In this document: positions 2,983-31,034 of the stretch, in pieces
How positions within the stretch are numbered: position 1 is the first letter of the stretch
Layout: every line of letters starts with the position of its first letter
Assembly: GCA_024704765.1 (NCBI GenBank)
Contig: JAKMXF010000137.1
Span: forward strand, 1-32,960
Direction of reading: 5' to 3'
Length of the DNA: 32,960 nucleotides
Origin: Oopsacas minuta
Lineage: Eukaryota > Animalia > Porifera
Notes under the pieces: model-generated
Database searches by the model: none
What the model saw: the letters and a program-made list of their open reading frames with translations, nothing else
What the model was told of the DNA's origin: nothing
Program-made: the position numbers and the translations under genes

Positions 2983-3076
2983 ATGAATAATTCATGCGGC
3001 AGGTTCTGTTAACCCACCAAATTATTAATTCCCTCTCTTACTATATTTAGTGATTCTTTATACTCAATACTATTAT

Positions 3077-4743
3077 ATGAATATATTTGAAATATGTCGG
3101 ACATACGAGGCTAAACCTCAGTCTCCAGTGATCTCATCCTTTTCAGCTTCTCACTTCTACAGAGAGCACTTCAGAGCAGTATTCATTGAACAACATGTGG
3201 AATATTCTCACGAGTTATCTGATGATATTATATTCTATATAACAGCTGGACACGGAGGACCAACACTCACAGTAGCTAGGAGAGAGTCTGTGTCTCCAAT
3301 GACTGACCTTGAGCTTGACTGGCAGGCTACTTTCTATGCTAATCTGGTGCTACATACACTGGAGTATACTATGATTTGTGCTGTCGGGTGTACTAATGAT
3401 AAAAATGTTTTCAAGTTGGTTAGCATATTGTACTTAATACAGTAGAGTCTCCGAATAACTGACGCGTTGGGAGCATCTCTTCTGTCCGTTGTAGAGGGAT
3501 TGTCTGCTTCCCGAAGTGTCCGTTTTGGGAGACTCCACTTGTCTTATACTTAGTTGAGAAGTATGGAATAATTCATTTCATACTTCTCAACCTGAAATGG
3601 CGGGACATCACGGGACGTAGCAATAAGGTTTTTAACATTTCTATGTGCATATTTTCACACCTTTTGATACTTTTGTATTTTAACCTAATCAGATTGTAGG
3701 GGAGTGTTTGTAATTTAATTAGTACTGTAATGTATTTGTATTGATGGAGACTGTAATTCTATTGGTCAATCCATTCTATTAAATATATATACACTGATTT
3801 ATCATATGATTAATCATATTTTCACACCTTTGGTGAACATTAAAATTGTCATACTAATTAGCTTTCACCTGTTAAATAGGCTTAAACAAGGAAGTAGAAT
3901 TCTATTTTAATATTTTAAACTGTCTAACAAGATTATTATATTTCATTTTATCTTTCTTTGCTAAAATGAATATTTATTGAATAATATAATTTCAATAATC
4001 CACTGATATTAATTTGTATATTTAAGTCGGCGCAGACGATGATTTGAGTGTTTTGATCCCATGGGGGTTCACAACATATGCGTAGCCATGGGGTTGCCGG
4101 TAACCCCAGGGCTACTGTCACCAATCTCAAAGGTGAAATGCTAGCTACACCTGGTTCACTATAAGATACTCTTACTGTATTATCTTTCTCCTTTAGTCCT
4201 CTTCACAAATGCACGAAACGTGTCTATCCTAGTCCAAGCCAATCCCGTATGGACAAGAAAGGAAAATCAACAACTATTTGCTATCCACACATATACTTCT
4301 CAGTTGATGACTACGAACAAACATTCTCAGAGATACATGTAGGGCCTGACCACAGACTAGCAGTTGAGGTTATTGCTACTAACCAAAAGTTCGGAGTTAG
4401 TAAATCTGTATTCGCTGGTATGGTAGAGTATTCGTTGCTGAGGAATGCAGTAGATAGAGCTGTACATAGTAGGTCTACTCTATTCAAGAAACTGACAGCT
4501 ACTTTCCATGCAAGCCCTCCTTCTCCTTACGAGTTTGTTAGAATGAACGGACCTAAAGGTAAGGGACACGCAGAGGTGGCTATATCCGTAGAACCTGTTG
4601 CTGTCCTCCATTCTGCCATCACAGCCACTTCAGTGCCATCTAGCAAACTACCATTGACCTGTCATGTCACATATGTGGAGCTACATGTGGATAGCTTGGT
4701 ACAGGACATAATGCGAGGTAAGAAATCACCTATACTATCCTGA
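3077..4743 (+). CDS. KIAA0930: KIAA0930 / DUF2045 family protein, 2 exons, about 294 aa
   Basis: Exons 3077-3414 and 4197-4743 with a phase-2 GT-AG intron. Motifs DDIIFY, DWQATFYANL, VYPSPSQSRMDKKG, YPHIYFSVDDYEQTF, EFVRMNGPKGKGHAEVAIS and LTCHVTYVEL match the family. The start codon and exact donor are inferred. Confidence 0.88.
3440..3541. mobile_element. About 100-bp Tigger-like MITE in the KIAA0930 intron
   Basis: TA|CAGTAGAGTCTCC ... GGAGACTCCACTTG imperfect TIRs. Confidence 0.6.
3639..4003 (-). repeat. Interspersed repeat family B, inverted copy
   Basis: Reverse complement aligns by eye to 24693-25097 and 9901-10218. Confidence 0.8.
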
Positions 4744-4934
4744 TGGTATCACTTTATAAGCCCTGTGTATATTCCATTAAAGCTATGCAATCACTATGCT
4801 AAGCTCTGTATATTAGTATAGTGATAATCTCAATTAATTGTCTGTATAATTCTATATTGGTATTATTTATTTCATACAGTATTATTTGTATACCTGATAT
4901 TAATATTTATTATTGCCATAACTTACAGCTGTTA

Positions 4935-5104
4935 CCCTTTAACCATTGTTCTATCAGCTGGTAGATAATTAACCATGGATGGTTGTTTTTGTTTATCTGT
5001 TATGCCATTTTTAGTTACTCCTTGCTTGATTGGAGGTGTTTTTCATATAACATTAAATAAAGGGAAATTAACATCCATGGTTCATTATCTAACAACCATA
5101 GGGG
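4935..5104. mobile_element. Small foldback/MITE
   Basis: Inverted arms TAGATAATTAACCATGGATG / CATCCATGGTTCATTATCTA. Confidence 0.45.
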
Positions 5105-5125
5105 CAAAGCATTAGCGTTCCTCAT

Positions 5126-5392
5126 GTTGCCATGCACTTCAATATAATTATACCGGTTATAAGAACATTCTTAGAATAGTAGTTAATTGGTTTTATTACT
5201 GGTATGTTTGTATAATCAGCATTAATAATACAGTAAATATTAAAACCGTTTCTCTAATATGGTTCTTACATCCAAATGTGTTTAAGTGAAGTGTTCTCAT
5301 AACCGACACCCACTATATACTACATACCGGTAATGAGAACATGTCAGATTATGTCCAGTCCTCAACGGTGTTCTTATAACCGGTTTACACTG
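5126..5392 (-). mobile_element. Tigger-like MITE family A
   Basis: Near-identical inverted copy at 25244-25509. Ends GGTTTACACTG|TA. Contains repeated ACCGGTTATAAGAAC motifs, also seen at 11161-11502. Confidence 0.8.
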
Positions 5393-5659
5393 TACTTCTA
5401 TTTAAGCGGGTATTTCTATATAACAGGAGTTGACTATATGACCATACAGTCAACATCCGGTAACCCGAACCCCGAAGGAAATCAAAATCCGTTCAAGATA
5501 ACGAATGTTCGAGTTATAAACGGATGGCCTCTATGTCTCAATGTCTCCTGCACGTGACTGTTTGAGATATTTACTGCTTATTCAGTTTCTGTGTTCTATA
5601 CAGCAAACATCCGAGATAAGGAATATTGACTATATTTGAATCTCCCATTAACTCTAGTG

Positions 5660-7375
5660 ATGGATATAATATTTCCTCCCTCAAACGTGGTGGCATACTT
5701 CAAAAAGCAAGTACTCCTCCCTCACATATGGACGGGTAAGGATCTACAACTTGAATTAACACCTCTACAAAAAGCATGTGTAACTCTACAACACAATAAA
5801 GTAGTAAAACTCCTTGATAAGAGACATACACAGCTGAACTCAGGATTTGATTCATCAGATATTGAGTACCCTGGTGCTGGCTTAACACCATTGGAATGTT
5901 GTCTGAAGGAGAATGCTTGTGTATTATTGAGTAATTATAATCCTACAAAGAAGACTTATCGCTATCACATTAATAATTATATTTCAAGACGTAAGGTTAA
6001 ATCTAGGAAGAATATACTGACAGCTCTACTCAAGGCACGTATGCATATTCAGCCGGGATGGAGTGCTCACAGCCCGTTGGAGATTCCTTGGAGTATTCTA
6101 GATAAGGACGAGACACAAGCGGTGGTTGACTTTGTGGATCTGTCCACAGGACAAGTTGCAGAGTCAATAGCACAGGGCTGGATAAACTGGCTTAAGAATA
6201 TCCATTATACGTCTACAGAAGCTTTCTTTCTTAACCATCTCAGTCCGTTCTACATAAGATACCCTCGCTGTTGTATGAGATATCAATTTAGAATGATGGC
6301 AGCCGGGGTGAAGCATGGAGGGAAACTACAAATGTTCGGTAATACAGGCCAACTACTTGTCACCCTGCTAGACAATGCCCTCGTATTCCAAGCCATGCTA
6401 TCATGTTATCATTGTGTAAATGGGACTAATGTACACGTGCCTGATTTTGATTGGATAAGCCAGAACCTGACAAACATTCTTGAGACTGATTTCTACAAAT
6501 GGAAATCAATATACAGGGCTATGCGTGGATACATGGATCTCCTGCTATCTGAGAGTGTAGTAGAATTTGATAATAACCTAATAGAGCATAACCCTAGGCA
6601 GCTACCAGGTTATGTACTCACTCGATTCAGAGTTGTAGCGAGAGGGTTAGTTTGCATGGATAGAGAGGAGAATAGACATATAGGGAAGCTTCTAGACTTA
6701 ACTATTCAAGTTATTTATCGTGTAATTAACGTGTTTCGTGTCAAAGGGGTTGATGAAGATCTGGAGAAGTTAGTTTGCTGTATTATCAGCGCTCTGACAT
6801 CATTTAGGATAGAATTATTGGAGCCAAATAATGGTGAAAAGATCCGTAATTGTGTCAGAAAACTGTTTGGAATAGTACAATTGAATGATCACATTCCATT
6901 CGTCATAATGCGTCAAGCTGTTGCTAACATACCAGTTGATATCCTAGAGATATATATTCCTATCATATTTAACTTCCTGTCTGATCTTGACATAAACCTT
7001 AATATGAGATCCAGAATAAATAATGAAAATCTACTACTCACTTCTATTTCAAATCATACTTTCACTTTCCTGCTGATTGACCTATTGTTGGAACTGAAAG
7101 TATACCCTTTTACAGTGAATAACTCGGGTCTTTGTTTTGCCAGTCATATAGATGAATTTTTCGTCAGGAATTTGGGGACCTTATTTGAAGAAGATCTTGA
7201 TTCACTTGAATTTCTGAAATCAGATTTTCCGATTCTCAAAAAGCCTTACAGTTTGAAAATATTATCTGCTCAGGCTTCGGGGCAAGCTATTGAGAAATTC
7301 CCTAAATTAGCAGATTGTATTTCTCCTCAAAAACAGCTGTTTGATTACGTAAAACTTCATATCAAAATTCCATAG
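5660..7375 (+). CDS. Divergent FEM1-like ankyrin-repeat protein, putative Cullin-RING substrate receptor, intronless, 571 aa from the ATG
   Basis: Long ORF. Ankyrin-like LTPLQKAC...VVKLLDK near the N-terminus, LLIDLLLELKVYPFTVNNSG near the C-terminus, FYIRY, and a terminal SLKILSAQA...LFDYVKLH resembling the FEM1 ending (LQCLAAR...FVxLH). Coding status is confident; the family call is moderate. Confidence 0.65.
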   Translation: MDIIFPPSNVVAYFKKQVLLPHIWTGKDLQLELTPLQKACVTLQHNKVVKLLDKRHTQLNSGFDSSDIEYPGAGLTPLECCLKENACVLLSNYNPTKKTYRYHINNYISRRKVKSRKNILTALLKARMHIQPGWSAHSPLEIPWSILDKDETQAVVDFVDLSTGQVAESIAQGWINWLKNIHYTSTEAFFLNHLSPFYIRYPRCCMRYQFRMMAAGVKHGGKLQMFGNTGQLLVTLLDNALVFQAMLSCYHCVNGTNVHVPDFDWISQNLTNILETDFYKWKSIYRAMRGYMDLLLSESVVEFDNNLIEHNPRQLPGYVLTRFRVVARGLVCMDREENRHIGKLLDLTIQVIYRVINVFRVKGVDEDLEKLVCCIISALTSFRIELLEPNNGEKIRNCVRKLFGIVQLNDHIPFVIMRQAVANIPVDILEIYIPIIFNFLSDLDINLNMRSRINNENLLLTSISNHTFTFLLIDLLLELKVYPFTVNNSGLCFASHIDEFFVRNLGTLFEEDLDSLEFLKSDFPILKKPYSLKILSAQASGQAIEKFPKLADCISPQKQLFDYVKLHIKIP

Positions 7376-7627
7376 TATCATCCCTTACTTCACTGTAGCA
7401 CACTTTATCACTGATTATCATATTTGTAGTTTGAACTTTGATATATTTGACTTTATTTTCAGTTAATTATATAAGCCGAATTATGTTATACTAAGAACAT
7501 GCTTGTTCTATTTTCACACCTATTAATATTAGTGACGGTACCAGAGAGGCAGGGTATAGGGAGTCTAAGGGGATAGCTATAGGCCTGTTTCGTGCTAGAT
7601 TGAGTTAACTGTATTAGTGAACCATGG

Positions 7628-7644
7628 ATATATATATATATATA
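7628..7644. repeat. (TA)n microsatellite
   Basis: Direct reading of the sequence. Confidence 0.8.
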
Positions 7645-7940
7645 ACTACCTTACCAGATTGGGTCGTTTGCCATGTTCCCTCTAACTTTTGGGTGTCCGT
7701 ATGGTATTGACAAAATTGATAAATTCGGGAGAATATACTGGCTGTATGCCGTCCTTAGAGAGAGCATTGATCATTTGTATTGTTGCTATAAATATTACTT
7801 TCATTTGAGTCTTTGAGTTAGATTTTGATTTTTCAGAGTTGCCATCGCACGTCCCGGCATCGTTTCAACAAAACAAATATTATAACACTGCTGATATATA
7901 CAATATTGAAATTCATATATAACTAATATTTATACAAAAA

Positions 7941-9050
7941 TTATGCAAACTCAAAGAATATTCTTACTGTTGCTAGTTTATCTAATTTATTCCATAAATG
8001 ATATTCCCTGCTTATCCAATCCTCATCTCCTACTTCAAGCTGTTTATCCTTATCTTCAGAAAACATGTTAAACTTACTGTTATCAGCTAAATTAACATTG
8101 TAGAAGTGTATGTATGTTATAGTACATGAGTTTATTACGTCATCATTATCTCCCTTCAATCTCCTTACATAATACTTAGCACCATACTCTGTGGATGGAT
8201 GCCAAGAATCCTGTCTTGTAACCACATGCATTCTGAGTTTACATTGTCCCAGATAGAAGATTGGTCCATAAACGGTTTCATCTTCTCGATACCCGTGTGT
8301 CCATTCTATTCCTTGTAGTGTCTTACCTCTATCTGATATGAATTCAGTAATATACCCAGCTGTAGACATTAGAGACTGTATAGACTGTTCATATGTCTGT
8401 ATAGACTGTATGGATGACTGTATAGACTGTTCATGTGACTGTATAGATAGTTCGTTCCGTTGTATCTTATCTCTCTCCATAAGTATGAGAGGGATTAGAA
8501 TAGCTATACCCGTGATAACTAGTGCTAACAAAATCCATATACTTCTATACAAATCGGTTTGTTTGTTTGTTGTTTCAAATTCCTTCTTATTCATTTTGTC
8601 ATTTAGCTGTTTGTTCTCAGTTCTCAGCTGTTCGTTACCAATTCTCAGCTGATTCAATTCATGTAGCAATAATTTCTGGTGACTAATCATATTCTGAGTT
8701 ATATGTGTGTTCAGGTCCTTTCTAGCTATTTCAATTGTCTCACAACCTACTTCCATATAAGGACATGTAACAACACCATCTGGATTGTCCAGACAAATTC
8801 TAGCGTGTTCGTTTGTTCTGTTAGCTTGTACTTCTTTTCTACAGTACTCGCACATTTGATTTCGGAAGGGACACTTTTTCTGGTGGTCCAATGTGTCACA
8901 TTTTTGTAACACCTCTCCACATCCTTTCTCACATTTTATTTTCACTTTATCACAACCATTCATGTGTTCCTCAATATTCTCCAGCTTTCCTGACCAATCA
9001 CAACCTCGTATTGATAGAGGACATCTGCATTCCAGTTCCCTTACGACCCC
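7941..9050 (-). CDS. TRAF-like paralog 2: TRAF zinc fingers, coiled coil, TM helix, heptad stalk, MATH-like domain; 5'-partial
   Basis: The frame stays open up to the gap: GVVRELECRCPLSIRGCDWSGKLENIEEHMNGC, then KCEKGCG...HQKKCPFRNQMCEYC...HARIC...CPYMEVGC...HITQN (TRAF-type Zn fingers). TM IWILLALVITGIAILIPLILM at 8478-8540. MATH-like EWTHG...VYGPIFYLGQCKLRMHV...VRIFFEFA. A RING domain would lie in the N gap. Confidence 0.85.
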   Translation of the reverse strand, partial: GVVRELECRCPLSIRGCDWSGKLENIEEHMNGCDKVKIKCEKGCGEVLQKCDTLDHQKKCPFRNQMCEYCRKEVQANRTNEHARICLDNPDGVVTCPYMEVGCETIEIARKDLNTHITQNMISHQKLLLHELNQLRIGNEQLRTENKQLNDKMNKKEFETTNKQTDLYRSIWILLALVITGIAILIPLILMERDKIQRNELSIQSHEQSIQSSIQSIQTYEQSIQSLMSTAGYITEFISDRGKTLQGIEWTHGYREDETVYGPIFYLGQCKLRMHVVTRQDSWHPSTEYGAKYYVRRLKGDNDDVINSCTITYIHFYNVNLADNSKFNMFSEDKDKQLEVGDEDWISREYHLWNKLDKLATVRIFFEFA

Positions 9051-9647
9051 NNNNNNNNNNNNNNNNNNNNNNNNNNNNNNNNNNNNNNNNNNNNNNNNNN
9101 NNNNNNNNNNNNNNNNNNNNNNNNNNNNNNNNNNNNNNNNNNNNNNNNNNNNNNNNNNNNNNNNNNNNNNNNNNNNNNNNNNNNNNNNNNNNNNNNNNNN
9201 NNNNNNNNNNNNNNNNNNNNNNNNNNNNNNNNNNNNNNNNNNNNNNNNNNNNNNNNNNNNNNNNNNNNNNNNNNNNNNNNNNNNNNNNNNNNNNNNNNNN
9301 NNNNNNNNNNNNNNNNNNNNNNNNNNNNNNNNNNNNNNNNNNNNNNNNNNNNNNNNNNNNNNNNNNNNNNNNNNNNNNNNNNNNNNNNNNNNNNNNNNNN
9401 NNNNNNNNNNNNNNNNNNNNNNNNNNNNNNNNNNNNNNNNNNNNNNNNNNNNNNNNNNNNNNNNNNNNNNNNNNNNNNNNNNNNNNNNNNNNNNNNNNNN
9501 NNNNNNNNNNNNNNNNNNNNNNNNNNNNNNNNNNNNNNNNNNNNNNNNNNNNNNNNNNNNNNNNNNNNNNNNNNNNNNNNNNNNNNNNNNNNNNNNNNNN
9601 NNNNNNNNNNNNNNNNNNNNNNNNNNNNNNNNNNNNNNNNNNNNNNN
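9051..9647. other. Assembly gap (run of N)
   Basis: Direct reading of the sequence. Confidence 1.
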
Positions 9648-16089: not shown

Positions 16090-17253
16090 ATGGCCACCAA
16101 ATACCCAGATGAAATTCCTACCAACAATTTCGAAATAGCTGAACAACAGATCCACTCCACGTTCGAGAAGATAATTATAATTGCGACAAAGAGGAGAGAT
16201 CAACTGCTTGTCCAGCTGTTCGATATTAAGCAGGACAATCTGAGGAAGGAGATTACAAGAAAGAAACAAGTAGCAGACCTGGAGAATCTAATCCAACAAT
16301 TAATGGAAACTAGCATTCAGCAGAACCAATTATTAAAGTTTCAAAATGACCAGATGAGGCAAACAAGAGCTGAAATACAGAAACACGGAAAAGAAACAAT
16401 TATCCCAATCACTTCCCTCAATACTGAGGGTCTTGACTCTCTCATAGAACAGCTTGAGAAGTTGGGGTCTATTCAGGATATGGCTGTACCCTACAGAAAA
16501 AAGACCGAGCCGATCAGAAGGATTGGGGGTAAGGGCAGTAAGAAAGGAGAGCTGTATTTCCCTCATGGACTAACTCTAGACGGAGATAAGATCTATATAG
16601 CAGATACATTCAATAGTAGAATACAGATCTTCTCTACAGAGGGTAAGTTCATTCATGAATTTGGTAAGGGGCAGCTAAAGGCTCCACACGGTATAGCATT
16701 ACATAATGAATGGGTGTTTGTAAGTGATTTGGTAATTGGTACTGTATTTAAATTCTCTAAAACAATAAACAAATTATTAAACAGTGTTAAGGCAGGTATC
16801 AGTCACCCTCATGGTCTAACAACTGACACAAACGGAGAAGTGTTAGTTGCAGATTCTAATAATAGAATTGCAGTATTCAGCTCTGATTTACGACATATTA
16901 GAGAAATAGGAAAAGACAAACTCAAATCCCCGACAGACGTCAAAATCAATAATAATAAGATATTTGTAGCAGACAAAAATAGGACTAAAAATATTCACAT
17001 ATTCTCTAAATCTGGTGATTTGTTGAAAAGTTTCATAAAATTCGAAAATGGAGAAGGAATTATGTTTATGTGTTTTGATTTGTATAATAATATTTTAATT
17101 AGCGATTTTTTGGGAAATTCAATTAATATATTTACTAAAGATGGACAGCTGATACACAAAATTAAATGTAATGATCCTACAGGAATAGTTGTTAATAATA
17201 ACTTTGATATTATTTGTGCTAGTTGGTGTGATCATGTAATAAATATATATTAA
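16090..17253 (+). CDS. Coiled-coil + six-bladed NHL beta-propeller protein (TRIM-NHL-like, no RING or B-box), intronless, 387 aa
   Basis: N-terminal helical/coiled-coil region, then NHL repeats, e.g. GELYFPHGLTLDGDKIYIADTFNSRIQIF, LKAPHGIAL, SHPHGLTTDTNGEVLVADSNNRIAVF, LKSPTDVKI. Confidence 0.9.
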   Translation: MATKYPDEIPTNNFEIAEQQIHSTFEKIIIIATKRRDQLLVQLFDIKQDNLRKEITRKKQVADLENLIQQLMETSIQQNQLLKFQNDQMRQTRAEIQKHGKETIIPITSLNTEGLDSLIEQLEKLGSIQDMAVPYRKKTEPIRRIGGKGSKKGELYFPHGLTLDGDKIYIADTFNSRIQIFSTEGKFIHEFGKGQLKAPHGIALHNEWVFVSDLVIGTVFKFSKTINKLLNSVKAGISHPHGLTTDTNGEVLVADSNNRIAVFSSDLRHIREIGKDKLKSPTDVKINNNKIFVADKNRTKNIHIFSKSGDLLKSFIKFENGEGIMFMCFDLYNNILISDFLGNSINIFTKDGQLIHKIKCNDPTGIVVNNNFDIICASWCDHVINIY

Positions 17254-20126: not shown

Positions 20127-20777
20127 ATGTATCCTATATATTTATTGTATGTTTGTTTATTTACATCTAAGGTGTTAATCACCACACAACACACAACAAA
20201 TGGAACACAATACGTTTGTTATGACAAGATGGATTGTAGTATAGAAGAGATAGCTGAAGATTCAAAGTATATAACTTGCATTGATAATAAATGTTTTTGT
20301 GATGACACTTGCTTTGAGCAATTTTCAGATGGTCGTTGTGGCGTTAAGAGCTGTTATTTATACTCATTCGGGACAGATAGTTGTGAGTTCAGTGGTAAAA
20401 ATTGGCGTATAACTACAATCCTAGCAAAATACACAGGTTTCTTCGGCGGTGCATATTTCTATCTAGGAAGATGGGAATTGGGGGCAATCCAATTGGCTAT
20501 TTTCGTTGCTATCGTAATAACTCTACCGATTATTATGCTAGTATACTGTTTGGTGGGATTTTTGATGCTAAAAATAGGAGTAAAGCTACATTCCTTATAT
20601 GGAATTGTTAAGAGAGTTGTCATTAGTATTGTGACTGTTTGTTGTGTGCATTGTTTATTTGTTTGTGTTTGTTTAGTTTGGTATATTGTAGTTACAGTGC
20701 TAGTCTCACAGAATCTTCTCTTAGACTCTCAAGGCTGTGGAATGGGTAATGAACCTGAATATATCCATGTCGTGTAA
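20127..20777 (+). CDS. TM2-domain membrane protein with a Cys-rich ectodomain, intronless, 216 aa
   Basis: Signal-like N-terminus, a Cys-rich segment, TM2-like KNWRITTILAKYTGFFGGAYFYLGRWELGAIQL, further hydrophobic helices, and a C-terminal LLDSQGC. Confidence 0.8.
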   Translation: MYPIYLLYVCLFTSKVLITTQHTTNGTQYVCYDKMDCSIEEIAEDSKYITCIDNKCFCDDTCFEQFSDGRCGVKSCYLYSFGTDSCEFSGKNWRITTILAKYTGFFGGAYFYLGRWELGAIQLAIFVAIVITLPIIMLVYCLVGFLMLKIGVKLHSLYGIVKRVVISIVTVCCVHCLFVCVCLVWYIVVTVLVSQNLLLDSQGCGMGNEPEYIHVV

Positions 20778-29704: not shown

Positions 29705-30943
29705 TTAACAGATATCATCGTCATTAGTTCTGTATCCAAACAGAAGAAAATCAGCTTTGTATATCTCATATAGTTTCTTTCGCATTTCTAAGGGAATTGC
29801 ATTGAATGCGGTATTACAAATATTAATCTTAGTATTTGTAACAAAAGAGTCAAATTTGATCATATGGTTTAGATCGTTGTTACTTGTTAGATAATCCATA
29901 ACCAGATTAGATTCTTCGGTAGCATTCTCATGTTCGATGAGTATATCATATGAAAAAGCACATGGAGAGCAGAGGCGAGAGATTGGCTTCCAATGATCGT
30001 CTAATAAATCTGTAGAACCTGTCTCTTCCCAAATCACAATGATATATTGCAAGAATTCCATAAAAGTAATTTTCTTCAAATAGGGATCTCTTAACCTCCT
30101 GTACTGGAAGATAGTATCATTTTTAGCACTCTCATCTAAATAAGAATATGTCGAATTCATCTGTTCAATAAAATCTGATTCGCTTTCTGGCAAGCCACTT
30201 AAATATAACTTTTTAATGTAAACTTTATTCATCCCGTCTACATACATCACATGATGATCAAACTTATCATTAAAACCAGAAAGAAGCCGTCTAAACGGGT
30301 GTCGTGTAACAAGAAATTTTGTATATGTGTGTAACCGCTGAGCAGTTAGTAAGTAAGGTGTTAAATGAGTTCCTAATGAGAAAGAATATCTTTCTTCTGG
30401 ATTAGCTTCAGGAATTATAGTCCTACTAGCATTTTGCATATTTACAAACTTGTGTACCCAACCTCGAGAGGAGGCCTTGGGTACAACACAATGAAGAGCT
30501 TCATATGAATCATTGAAATAGATTCTAGCTAAGGACTTTATATCCATAAGTTGAATTCCTGAAATGTTAAGCTTATCACAATTTGTATTCAATACGTCTA
30601 GTCTACTTTTAAACAGCTGATATTTCTCGGTTAGAGGGTGATAACCTTTTGACAGCATCTTCTGTCGGTATCCATCTAAGAATGTTATTAAGCCATTCTC
30701 TTCATCGATTTTAATCAACATCAATTGATTCAAATTCTTACGATATACTAACCATGGAGTTTTAACTTGAGAGGGAAGAGTTATCTCGCTTACAGATGCA
30801 TCACCAGTATCTAGGTGCTTTAATAAGTTAATATCACTGATATCACTTTGCTTCAATTCAAAAGAGATGTGGATTACCAATAATCCAAAAGTAAAAGTTA
30901 ACAACATAATACTTAACAGAAAATTCTTTCTTGAAGATAACAT
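29705..30943 (-). CDS. Carbohydrate sulfotransferase, Sulfotransfer_2 (CHST8-14 type), type II Golgi membrane protein, intronless
   Basis: The likely start is MLSSRK at 30943, followed by a TM anchor. 5'-PSB CVVPKASSRGW, 3'-PB KFLVTRHPFRRLLSGFNDKF, DDHWKP...CSPC, LYEIYKADFLLFGY. Confidence 0.93.
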   Translation of the reverse strand: MLSSRKNFLLSIMLLTFTFGLLVIHISFELKQSDISDINLLKHLDTGDASVSEITLPSQVKTPWLVYRKNLNQLMLIKIDEENGLITFLDGYRQKMLSKGYHPLTEKYQLFKSRLDVLNTNCDKLNISGIQLMDIKSLARIYFNDSYEALHCVVPKASSRGWVHKFVNMQNASRTIIPEANPEERYSFSLGTHLTPYLLTAQRLHTYTKFLVTRHPFRRLLSGFNDKFDHHVMYVDGMNKVYIKKLYLSGLPESESDFIEQMNSTYSYLDESAKNDTIFQYRRLRDPYLKKITFMEFLQYIIVIWEETGSTDLLDDHWKPISRLCSPCAFSYDILIEHENATEESNLVMDYLTSNNDLNHMIKFDSFVTNTKINICNTAFNAIPLEMRKKLYEIYKADFLLFGYRTNDDDIC

Positions 30944-31034
30944 CGGTTGGAAGTAAAATCTAAAAATGAAAAATGAAGAAAATAATGTGTTTATTATAGT
31001 AAACAATCGACTGATCTTTCGGTTTCGGTATCAG

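Follow-up and report, generated by a model that had tools for sequence, protein, structure and literature searches.

The window analysed here is the entire 32,960-nt contig JAKMXF010000137.1 from the genome of the glass sponge Oopsacas minuta (GCA_024704765.1). It carries an intronless TRAF-like gene and, about 6 kb away, a second and incomplete copy (Table 1). The reading frame of the gene is uninterrupted from its stop codon to the edge of an assembly gap, where the 5′ end is lost. About 80 N-terminal codons and the promoter are hidden in this gap; alignments with two relatives, P0020 and P0005, reach the gap edge starting at residues 82–83 of those proteins. The annotated product, P0001, is the same frame entered at an internal ATG (position 8963, giving 340 amino acids), and the frame is open further, up to the gap. 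An exact look-up of the window protein returned the genome contig itself as the only match.

Table 1. Features of the TRAF-like gene and its second copy in the window
Feature	Position	Strand	Remarks
Open reading frame of the TRAF-like gene	7941-9050	-	369 codons, stop at 7941-7943
Divergent C-terminal domain, predicted MATH fold	7944-8366	-	two cysteines nearly invariant across the family alignment; from model and structure matches
Juxtamembrane segment and heptad-repeat stalk	8367-8477	-	QSIQSxx-type unit; Ile every 7 residues
Predicted transmembrane helix	8478-8540	-	21 residues (171-191); KD19 2.99
Leucine-heptad coiled coil, N-terminal side of the helix	8571-8696	-	Leu 128, 135, 142, 149
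TRAF-type zinc fingers	8706-9050	-	residues 1-115; Pfam zf-TRAF covers 8805-8957
Assembly gap	9051-9647	.	597 N; adjoins the 5′ end of the TRAF-like frame
Second copy, 5′-truncated and frameshifted	1523-2634 (~to 2674)	-	homology starts at a single N, 2635

Two open reading frames matching Pfam DUF2045 (3050-3445 and 4249-4743, both on the forward strand) are joined in the annotation with a 579-residue frame at 5636-7375 into one multi-exon gene of 858 amino acids (3050-7375, forward strand), which stands tail to tail with the TRAF-like gene. Further along lie a weak TM2-domain frame (20127-20777, forward strand; E 8e-4, below the cut-off), a Sulfotransfer_2 frame (29705-31006, reverse strand; E 1e-28) and an NHL-repeat gene encoding a six-bladed β-propeller (16090-17253, forward strand). 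Genes of this last kind are found a few kilobases from TRAF-like family members in the window and at all three other loci that we fetched (L001 1-1015, L002 14080-15330 and L003 2927-4153; three assemblies). This proximity might reflect microsynteny that has been conserved, or a family that expands along with this one.

The N-terminal part of the protein is plainly TRAF-like. Pfam recognizes zf-TRAF (PF02176) in the window frame above its cut-off (E 2.1e-7; 32 bits against 27), and the window protein matches the TRAF4 zinc finger 2yuc weakly. A search of PDB sequences with the N-terminal 215 residues of a paralog gave no match; the search succeeded with a profile of 22 family members, which found the TRAF4 zinc finger (5e-8) and the linker and zinc fingers 1-2 of TRAF6 (3e-5). 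Moreover, the model of a full-length paralog overlays the TRAF6 RING–zinc finger crystal structure 3hcs (E 2.6e-8; TM 0.70 by target). The zinc fingers proposed in the initial annotation are thus well founded.

The same annotation had allowed for a RING in the gap and suggested a built-in ubiquitin-signalling module in the protein. Full-length paralogs do not bear this out. Ahead of their first zinc finger they have four nearly invariant cysteines, spaced C-x2-C, about 15 residues, C-x2-C (C46, C49, C65 and C68 in P0005). In the profile alignment the post-RING linker of TRAF6 aligns only about 8 residues past the second cysteine pair, so that the segment for the last two RING ligands is missing, and none of the Pfam RING families matches the full-length paralogs at E<=1. 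We read these sequences as carrying a half-RING, with four of the eight zinc ligands. The corresponding module of the window gene would lie in the gap. Because the RING appears incomplete in the full-length paralogs, a built-in ubiquitin ligase is doubtful, and the idea of an E3 module is left unsupported.

Two heptad repeats flank the predicted membrane helix. Leucines recur at 7-residue intervals before it and isoleucines after it, and part of the leucine-heptad coiled coil is encoded by a 21-nt repeat (8605-8651). Long helices are also present in the paralog model, one of them (residues 201-230) at the position of the coiled coil.

The helix itself maps exactly to the hydrophobic segment first proposed. 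Its Kyte–Doolittle 19-residue mean (KD19 in Table 1) accompanies an uncharged span of 22 residues between an Arg and a Glu. Its counterpart in the second copy, at 2357-2419, was described as identical; this is right for the peptide but not for the DNA, which differs by one synonymous base. At least 28 homologues keep the helix at a corresponding position, after the coiled coil and before the stalk. Across 28 members KD19 is 2.0-3.3 and the uncharged span is 19-28 residues long; the helix sequences diverge widely, yet their hydrophobicity is kept. A divergent sequence with the same position and the same hydrophobicity in so many homologues is conserved beyond chance.

On the far side of the helix, the stalk is a tandem repeat with a period of 21 nt, encoding Ile at every seventh residue, with 3.5 copies in the window gene (8374-8447) and 8.8 copies in the second copy (2148-2332). 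Relatives have from 3 to more than 25 copies of units that may be 7-mers, 14-mers or ~40-mers. Both copy number and repeat unit vary among members while the heptad character is kept. The stalk of P0033 (L003 10001-11545), for instance, consists of eight 14-residue repeats, each with an N-S-S sequon; the units of other members (7 or ~40 residues) are unrelated to it. As judged from these repeats, the stalk appears to have been rebuilt on several occasions, with the helix and the C-terminal domain on either side retained.

The C-terminal domain was initially called MATH-like. This description holds for the fold but not for sequence models. The last 140-150 residues have no Pfam match at E<=1, and an hhalign comparison with the canonical MATH domains of the family itself gives a weak though in-register match (E 0.0067, probability 5.7%). 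By contrast, an AF2 model built on 17 family sequences (pLDDT 83.6, pTM 0.78) gave consistent structural matches. Foldseek found 60 matches in the PDB at E<=1e-3, and the 50 listed are all MATH domains of SPOP or USP7 (best 1.6e-5). Among Swiss-Prot models the matches are SPOP, plant MATH proteins and Dictyostelium TRAF-like proteins, and the matches among AFDB clusters are likewise MATH domains. Alignment with VIA-align gave Z 10.3 for SPOP (rmsd 2.7 Å over 110 residues) and Z 8.4-8.8 for the TRAF-C domains of TRAF6, TRAF2 and TRAF1. The model thus identifies a MATH domain at the level of the fold. SPOP and USP7 are its best structural matches, but they share only about 10-15% sequence identity with it, and both are found in soluble proteins of the nucleus or cytosol that carry BTB or protease domains; the common fold shows no common function. 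We also considered a TNF-like head, as a type II anchor followed by a stalk and a β-sandwich might suggest, and rejected it because all significant structural matches are MATH domains.

This domain is more variable than the zinc fingers. Mean pairwise identity among 13 glass-sponge paralogs from ENA (one assembly compared) is 84% for the zinc fingers and 68% for the MATH-like domain, whose variable columns cluster in loops. The variable ectodomain proposed for the window protein is borne out to this extent: stalk length and the loops of the MATH-like domain both differ between paralogs.

The window gene belongs to a family. A word-indexed search found 27 relatives, and an exhaustive profile search of 1.84 billion representatives gave 3144 matches, of which we inspected the best 150. 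At least 28 proteins share the full layout of zf-TRAF, coiled coil, helix, stalk and MATH-fold domain. Their sources are O. minuta itself and ENA assemblies for which it is the closest named relative. The methylmalonyl-CoA mutase encoded beside one ENA member shares 82% identity with the O. minuta enzyme and no more than 70% with those of other named animals, so that these assemblies represent other glass sponges or close kin. Full-length open reading frames of 430-580 amino acids occur in several assemblies that are ~18% apart in a conserved enzyme. All three full-length genes that we checked, from O. minuta and two ENA assemblies, are single uninterrupted frames (1332, 1356 and 1545 nt); one full-length paralog occupies positions 8001-9332 of L001. 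The genes can be arranged in tandem, with three members within 10 kb in L003. We conclude that this TRAF-derived family is real and lineage-specific, seen so far only in glass sponges (best 150 of 3144 matches inspected), and that the suggestion of a family rather than a one-off was correct. The first reading of the sequence knew of no TRAF with this topology, and neither did the full-text literature that we searched mention a membrane-spanning or tail-anchored TRAF; subscription journals lie mostly outside that search and absence is not proof. TRAF and MATH go unmentioned in the genome papers on O. minuta, which reports RNA-seq, and Aphrocallistes vastus.

Parts of the gene seem to recur in the genome in many near-identical copies. 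Across 8000-9050 the short-read contigs are 70-140 nt long, with many alternative bases and a very high summed word depth, unlike the flank at 7400-7900, which is one single short-read contig. Zinc-finger and stalk sequences present in many near-identical genomic copies probably caused the adjacent assembly gap. Four sequencing runs listed as RNA have flat depth across intergenic DNA, and in them the gene lies in fragmented, multi-variant contigs; they thus look like genomic DNA with a multi-copy family in it. A search confined to RNA libraries listed no run.

The second copy in the window is real, with 77% identity overall to 7941-9050, and in this respect the initial claim of two paralogs about 6 kb apart stands. 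It is not an equal partner, however: it lacks the zinc-finger region, the sequence upstream of the N at 2635 is unrelated, and a 1-nt deletion near 1740/1741 shifts its frame, with loss of the last strand of the domain. Of the 15 amino-acid differences that the two copies show in this domain, 12 cluster in a stretch of ~28 residues near its C-terminal third (1742-1840 against 7980-8070). For the whole MATH-like domain dN is 0.064 and dS 0.040, values that rest on small numbers and on a copy that is possibly a pseudogene. Relaxed constraint in the frameshifted copy may explain these differences as an alternative to diversifying selection.

Several relatives depart from the common layout. In P0004 the same MATH-like domain is joined to the coiled coil without the helix. 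P0004 and P0027 bear 'isoform' names, which we considered as a sign that the helix is spliced out; we rejected this because P0004 is one uninterrupted frame in the DNA, at a contig end. The names appear to have been copied from the best database matches. In P0020 and P0024 the helix is followed by a canonical MATH domain that Pfam recognizes. The L002 locus holds a soluble canonical TRAF gene (5975-7186) beside a TM-bearing member (8001-9356), and the MATH-coding part and ~130 nt of 3′ flank of these neighbours share ~91-95% DNA identity, with homology starting sharply before the domain. Such identity and so sharp a start indicate that P0024 is a recent chimera with the adjacent soluble TRAF, one that the sequences suggest arose by unequal exchange or gene conversion. 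A membrane helix followed by a canonical MATH domain is therefore ruled out as an ancestral form in the case of P0024. A canonical MATH domain, of the cytosolic type, behind the helix in two members also means that the placement of this domain relative to the membrane may be less constrained. Further O. minuta relatives (P0003, P0013, P0022 and P0026) are truncated or internally rearranged. These signs point to active recombination in the family, some copies of which may lack function.

How would such a protein sit in a membrane? We applied the positive-inside rule to charges within 15 residues of the uncharged span in 28 members. The N-terminal flank holds on average 4.96 Lys and Arg residues and the C-terminal flank 2.32, with mean net charges of +3.4 and -0.6, respectively. 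In 27 of the 28 members it is the N-terminal flank that carries the more positive charge; the members are related and so do not amount to 28 independent trials. The window protein's own bias is marginal (net +1 on the N-terminal flank against 0 on the C-terminal flank). The N-termini of full-length paralogs are hydrophilic and conserved and have no signal peptide. Together, the charge asymmetry, zinc fingers rich in cysteine and the missing signal peptide favour an N-in/C-out orientation. The type II placement first suggested, with the zinc fingers on the opposite side of the membrane from the MATH-like domain, is therefore the predicted one.

We consider it reasonably probable that these proteins are a type II single-pass family derived from TRAF, with the zinc-finger half in the cytosol and a MATH-fold cap held on a variable stalk on the opposite side. 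The internal helix would act as a signal anchor (residues 171-191 in the window protein) that keeps the N-terminal part in the cytosol. This part would comprise the half-RING, as deduced from paralogs, three TRAF zinc fingers and the leucine-heptad coiled coil, whereas the heptad stalk of variable length and the divergent MATH-fold cap would be extracellular or luminal. TRAF2 and TRAF6 are trimeric, with a stalk-and-cap 'mushroom' shape. By analogy, the helix would occupy a position inside the TRAF-N coiled coil of ordinary TRAFs, and the protein might form a trimer with its cap pointing outward and its zinc-finger arms toward the cytosol. A ligand bound to the variable loops of the cap could then cluster trimers and bring the cytosolic arms together. 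The RING being incomplete, the output would probably depend on a soluble TRAF that has a RING, of the kind encoded beside family members, or on another partner. Membrane insertion, orientation, trimerization, ligand binding and signalling are all steps that we infer, and a receptor-adaptor function is plausible on the same terms.

The proposed design has parts in common with several known systems. Canonical TRAFs are soluble and have a C3HC4 RING in TRAF2-7, though not in TRAF1. TRAF2, TRAF3, TRAF4 and TRAF6 share the order seen here: RING-like module, zinc fingers, coiled coil and MATH-fold domain. In the sponge family, coiled coil and MATH domain are set apart by a repeat stalk and a predicted transmembrane helix; the MATH domain is too divergent for any Pfam model, and the RING keeps four of eight ligands. 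Meprin α and β, astacin proteases of type I topology, have a C-terminal anchor and an extracellular MATH domain; the Pfam model bears the name 'TRAF/meprin MATH'. They too are membrane proteins with MATH on the extracellular side, which for the sponge family is a prediction; meprins, however, have no TRAF zinc fingers, whereas the sponge domain lies C-terminal to a signal anchor and the presumed cytosolic part is TRAF-like.

TNF-family ligands, class A scavenger receptors and collectin-type receptors each have a cytosolic N-terminus, a signal anchor, a coiled-coil stalk and a β-sandwich head at the C-terminus. This is the overall design of type II trimeric surface proteins and the one that we propose for the sponge family. 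The heads of the known proteins are TNF homology, SRCR or C-type lectin domains rather than MATH, and their cytosolic parts are short tails, against ~170-250 residues of zinc fingers here.

Sponges also encode tail-anchored TRAF-like zinc-finger proteins without a MATH domain: P0141 and P0157 in O. minuta, P0115 in the homoscleromorph Corticium candelabrum, and P0045 and P0125 in ENA assemblies. In P0115 a complete C3HC4 RING is combined with six zinc-finger repeats that are almost identical. These proteins resemble the family described here in combining TRAF zinc fingers with one hydrophobic helix; the database entries from O. minuta and C. candelabrum are named TRAF3, TRAF4-like or TRAF6-like. 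Unlike in that family, the helix forms the very C-terminal end of the chain.

The same type II topology might instead be realized inside the cell, in the membrane of the ER, Golgi, endolysosome or phagosome, with a luminal MATH-like domain and a role as organelle scaffold or luminal sensor. Nothing in the sequence specifies the plasma membrane; the tail-anchored proteins P0141, P0157 and P0115 would sit on internal membranes; and in Dictyostelium, damaged endolysosomes are a site of action of soluble TRAF-like E3s. Yet a long coiled-coil stalk of variable length and a variable cap are more typical of surface-exposed molecules, and we regard an internal location as a real but rather unlikely alternative.

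We think it improbable that the whole protein is cytosolic, with the hydrophobic segment serving as a peripheral or monotopic anchor or as the buried core of the coiled coil and the MATH-like domain binding cytosolic peptides, which would make it an ordinary TRAF associated with a membrane. Such an arrangement would suit P0004, which carries the same MATH-like domain without a helix, and P0024, whose canonical MATH domain behind the helix is almost identical to that of its soluble neighbour. Nor are N-glycosylation sequons enriched on the C-terminal side (58 observed, 57.5 expected from composition). However, P0024 is a recent recombinant and may be non-functional, and an uncharged stretch of 19-28 residues between charged flanks is too short for a hairpin, with Kyte–Doolittle values (2.0-3.3) far above the usual threshold of 1.6. 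The charge asymmetry in 27 of 28 members also speaks for a membrane-spanning segment. Least credible of all is the view that the window copies are decaying, recombining members of a multi-copy family and that this gene is a pseudogene or an assembly artefact: the adjoining 597-N gap, the truncation and frameshift of the second copy, the truncated or rearranged P0003, P0013, P0022 and P0026 and the fragmented, variant-rich short-read contigs over the gene would fit it, but the 369-codon frame is intact as far as the gap and 430-580-residue frames of the same architecture occur in several assemblies ~18% apart in a conserved enzyme.

Our preferred reading remains a TRAF-derived, type II single-pass family. 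It can be taken further, to a TRAF that is its own receptor: trimeric type II surface proteins, encoded in tandem and rapidly diversifying, whose caps recognize microbial or other non-self ligands and whose zinc-finger arms signal directly. We put this forward tentatively, as a possibility that we doubt more than we believe. If it is true, TRAF-type signalling would start in these animals without a separate TNFR- or TLR-like receptor.

In animal innate immunity, TRAFs are the textbook soluble adaptors, whose MATH domain reads receptor tails within the cytosol. A family in which a membrane helix separates the signalling portion from the MATH portion would wire a TRAF differently, joining recognition and adaptor in a single chain, and this in a syncytial lineage that is among the earliest-branching animals. 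Next to the meprins, such a family would be another class with an extracellular MATH domain. To our knowledge, almost nothing is known of immune or allorecognition receptors in glass sponges, and this family would provide candidates. Receptor families of this sort usually show what is seen here: genes in tandem, stalks of varying length, variable loops and paralogs that recombine often.
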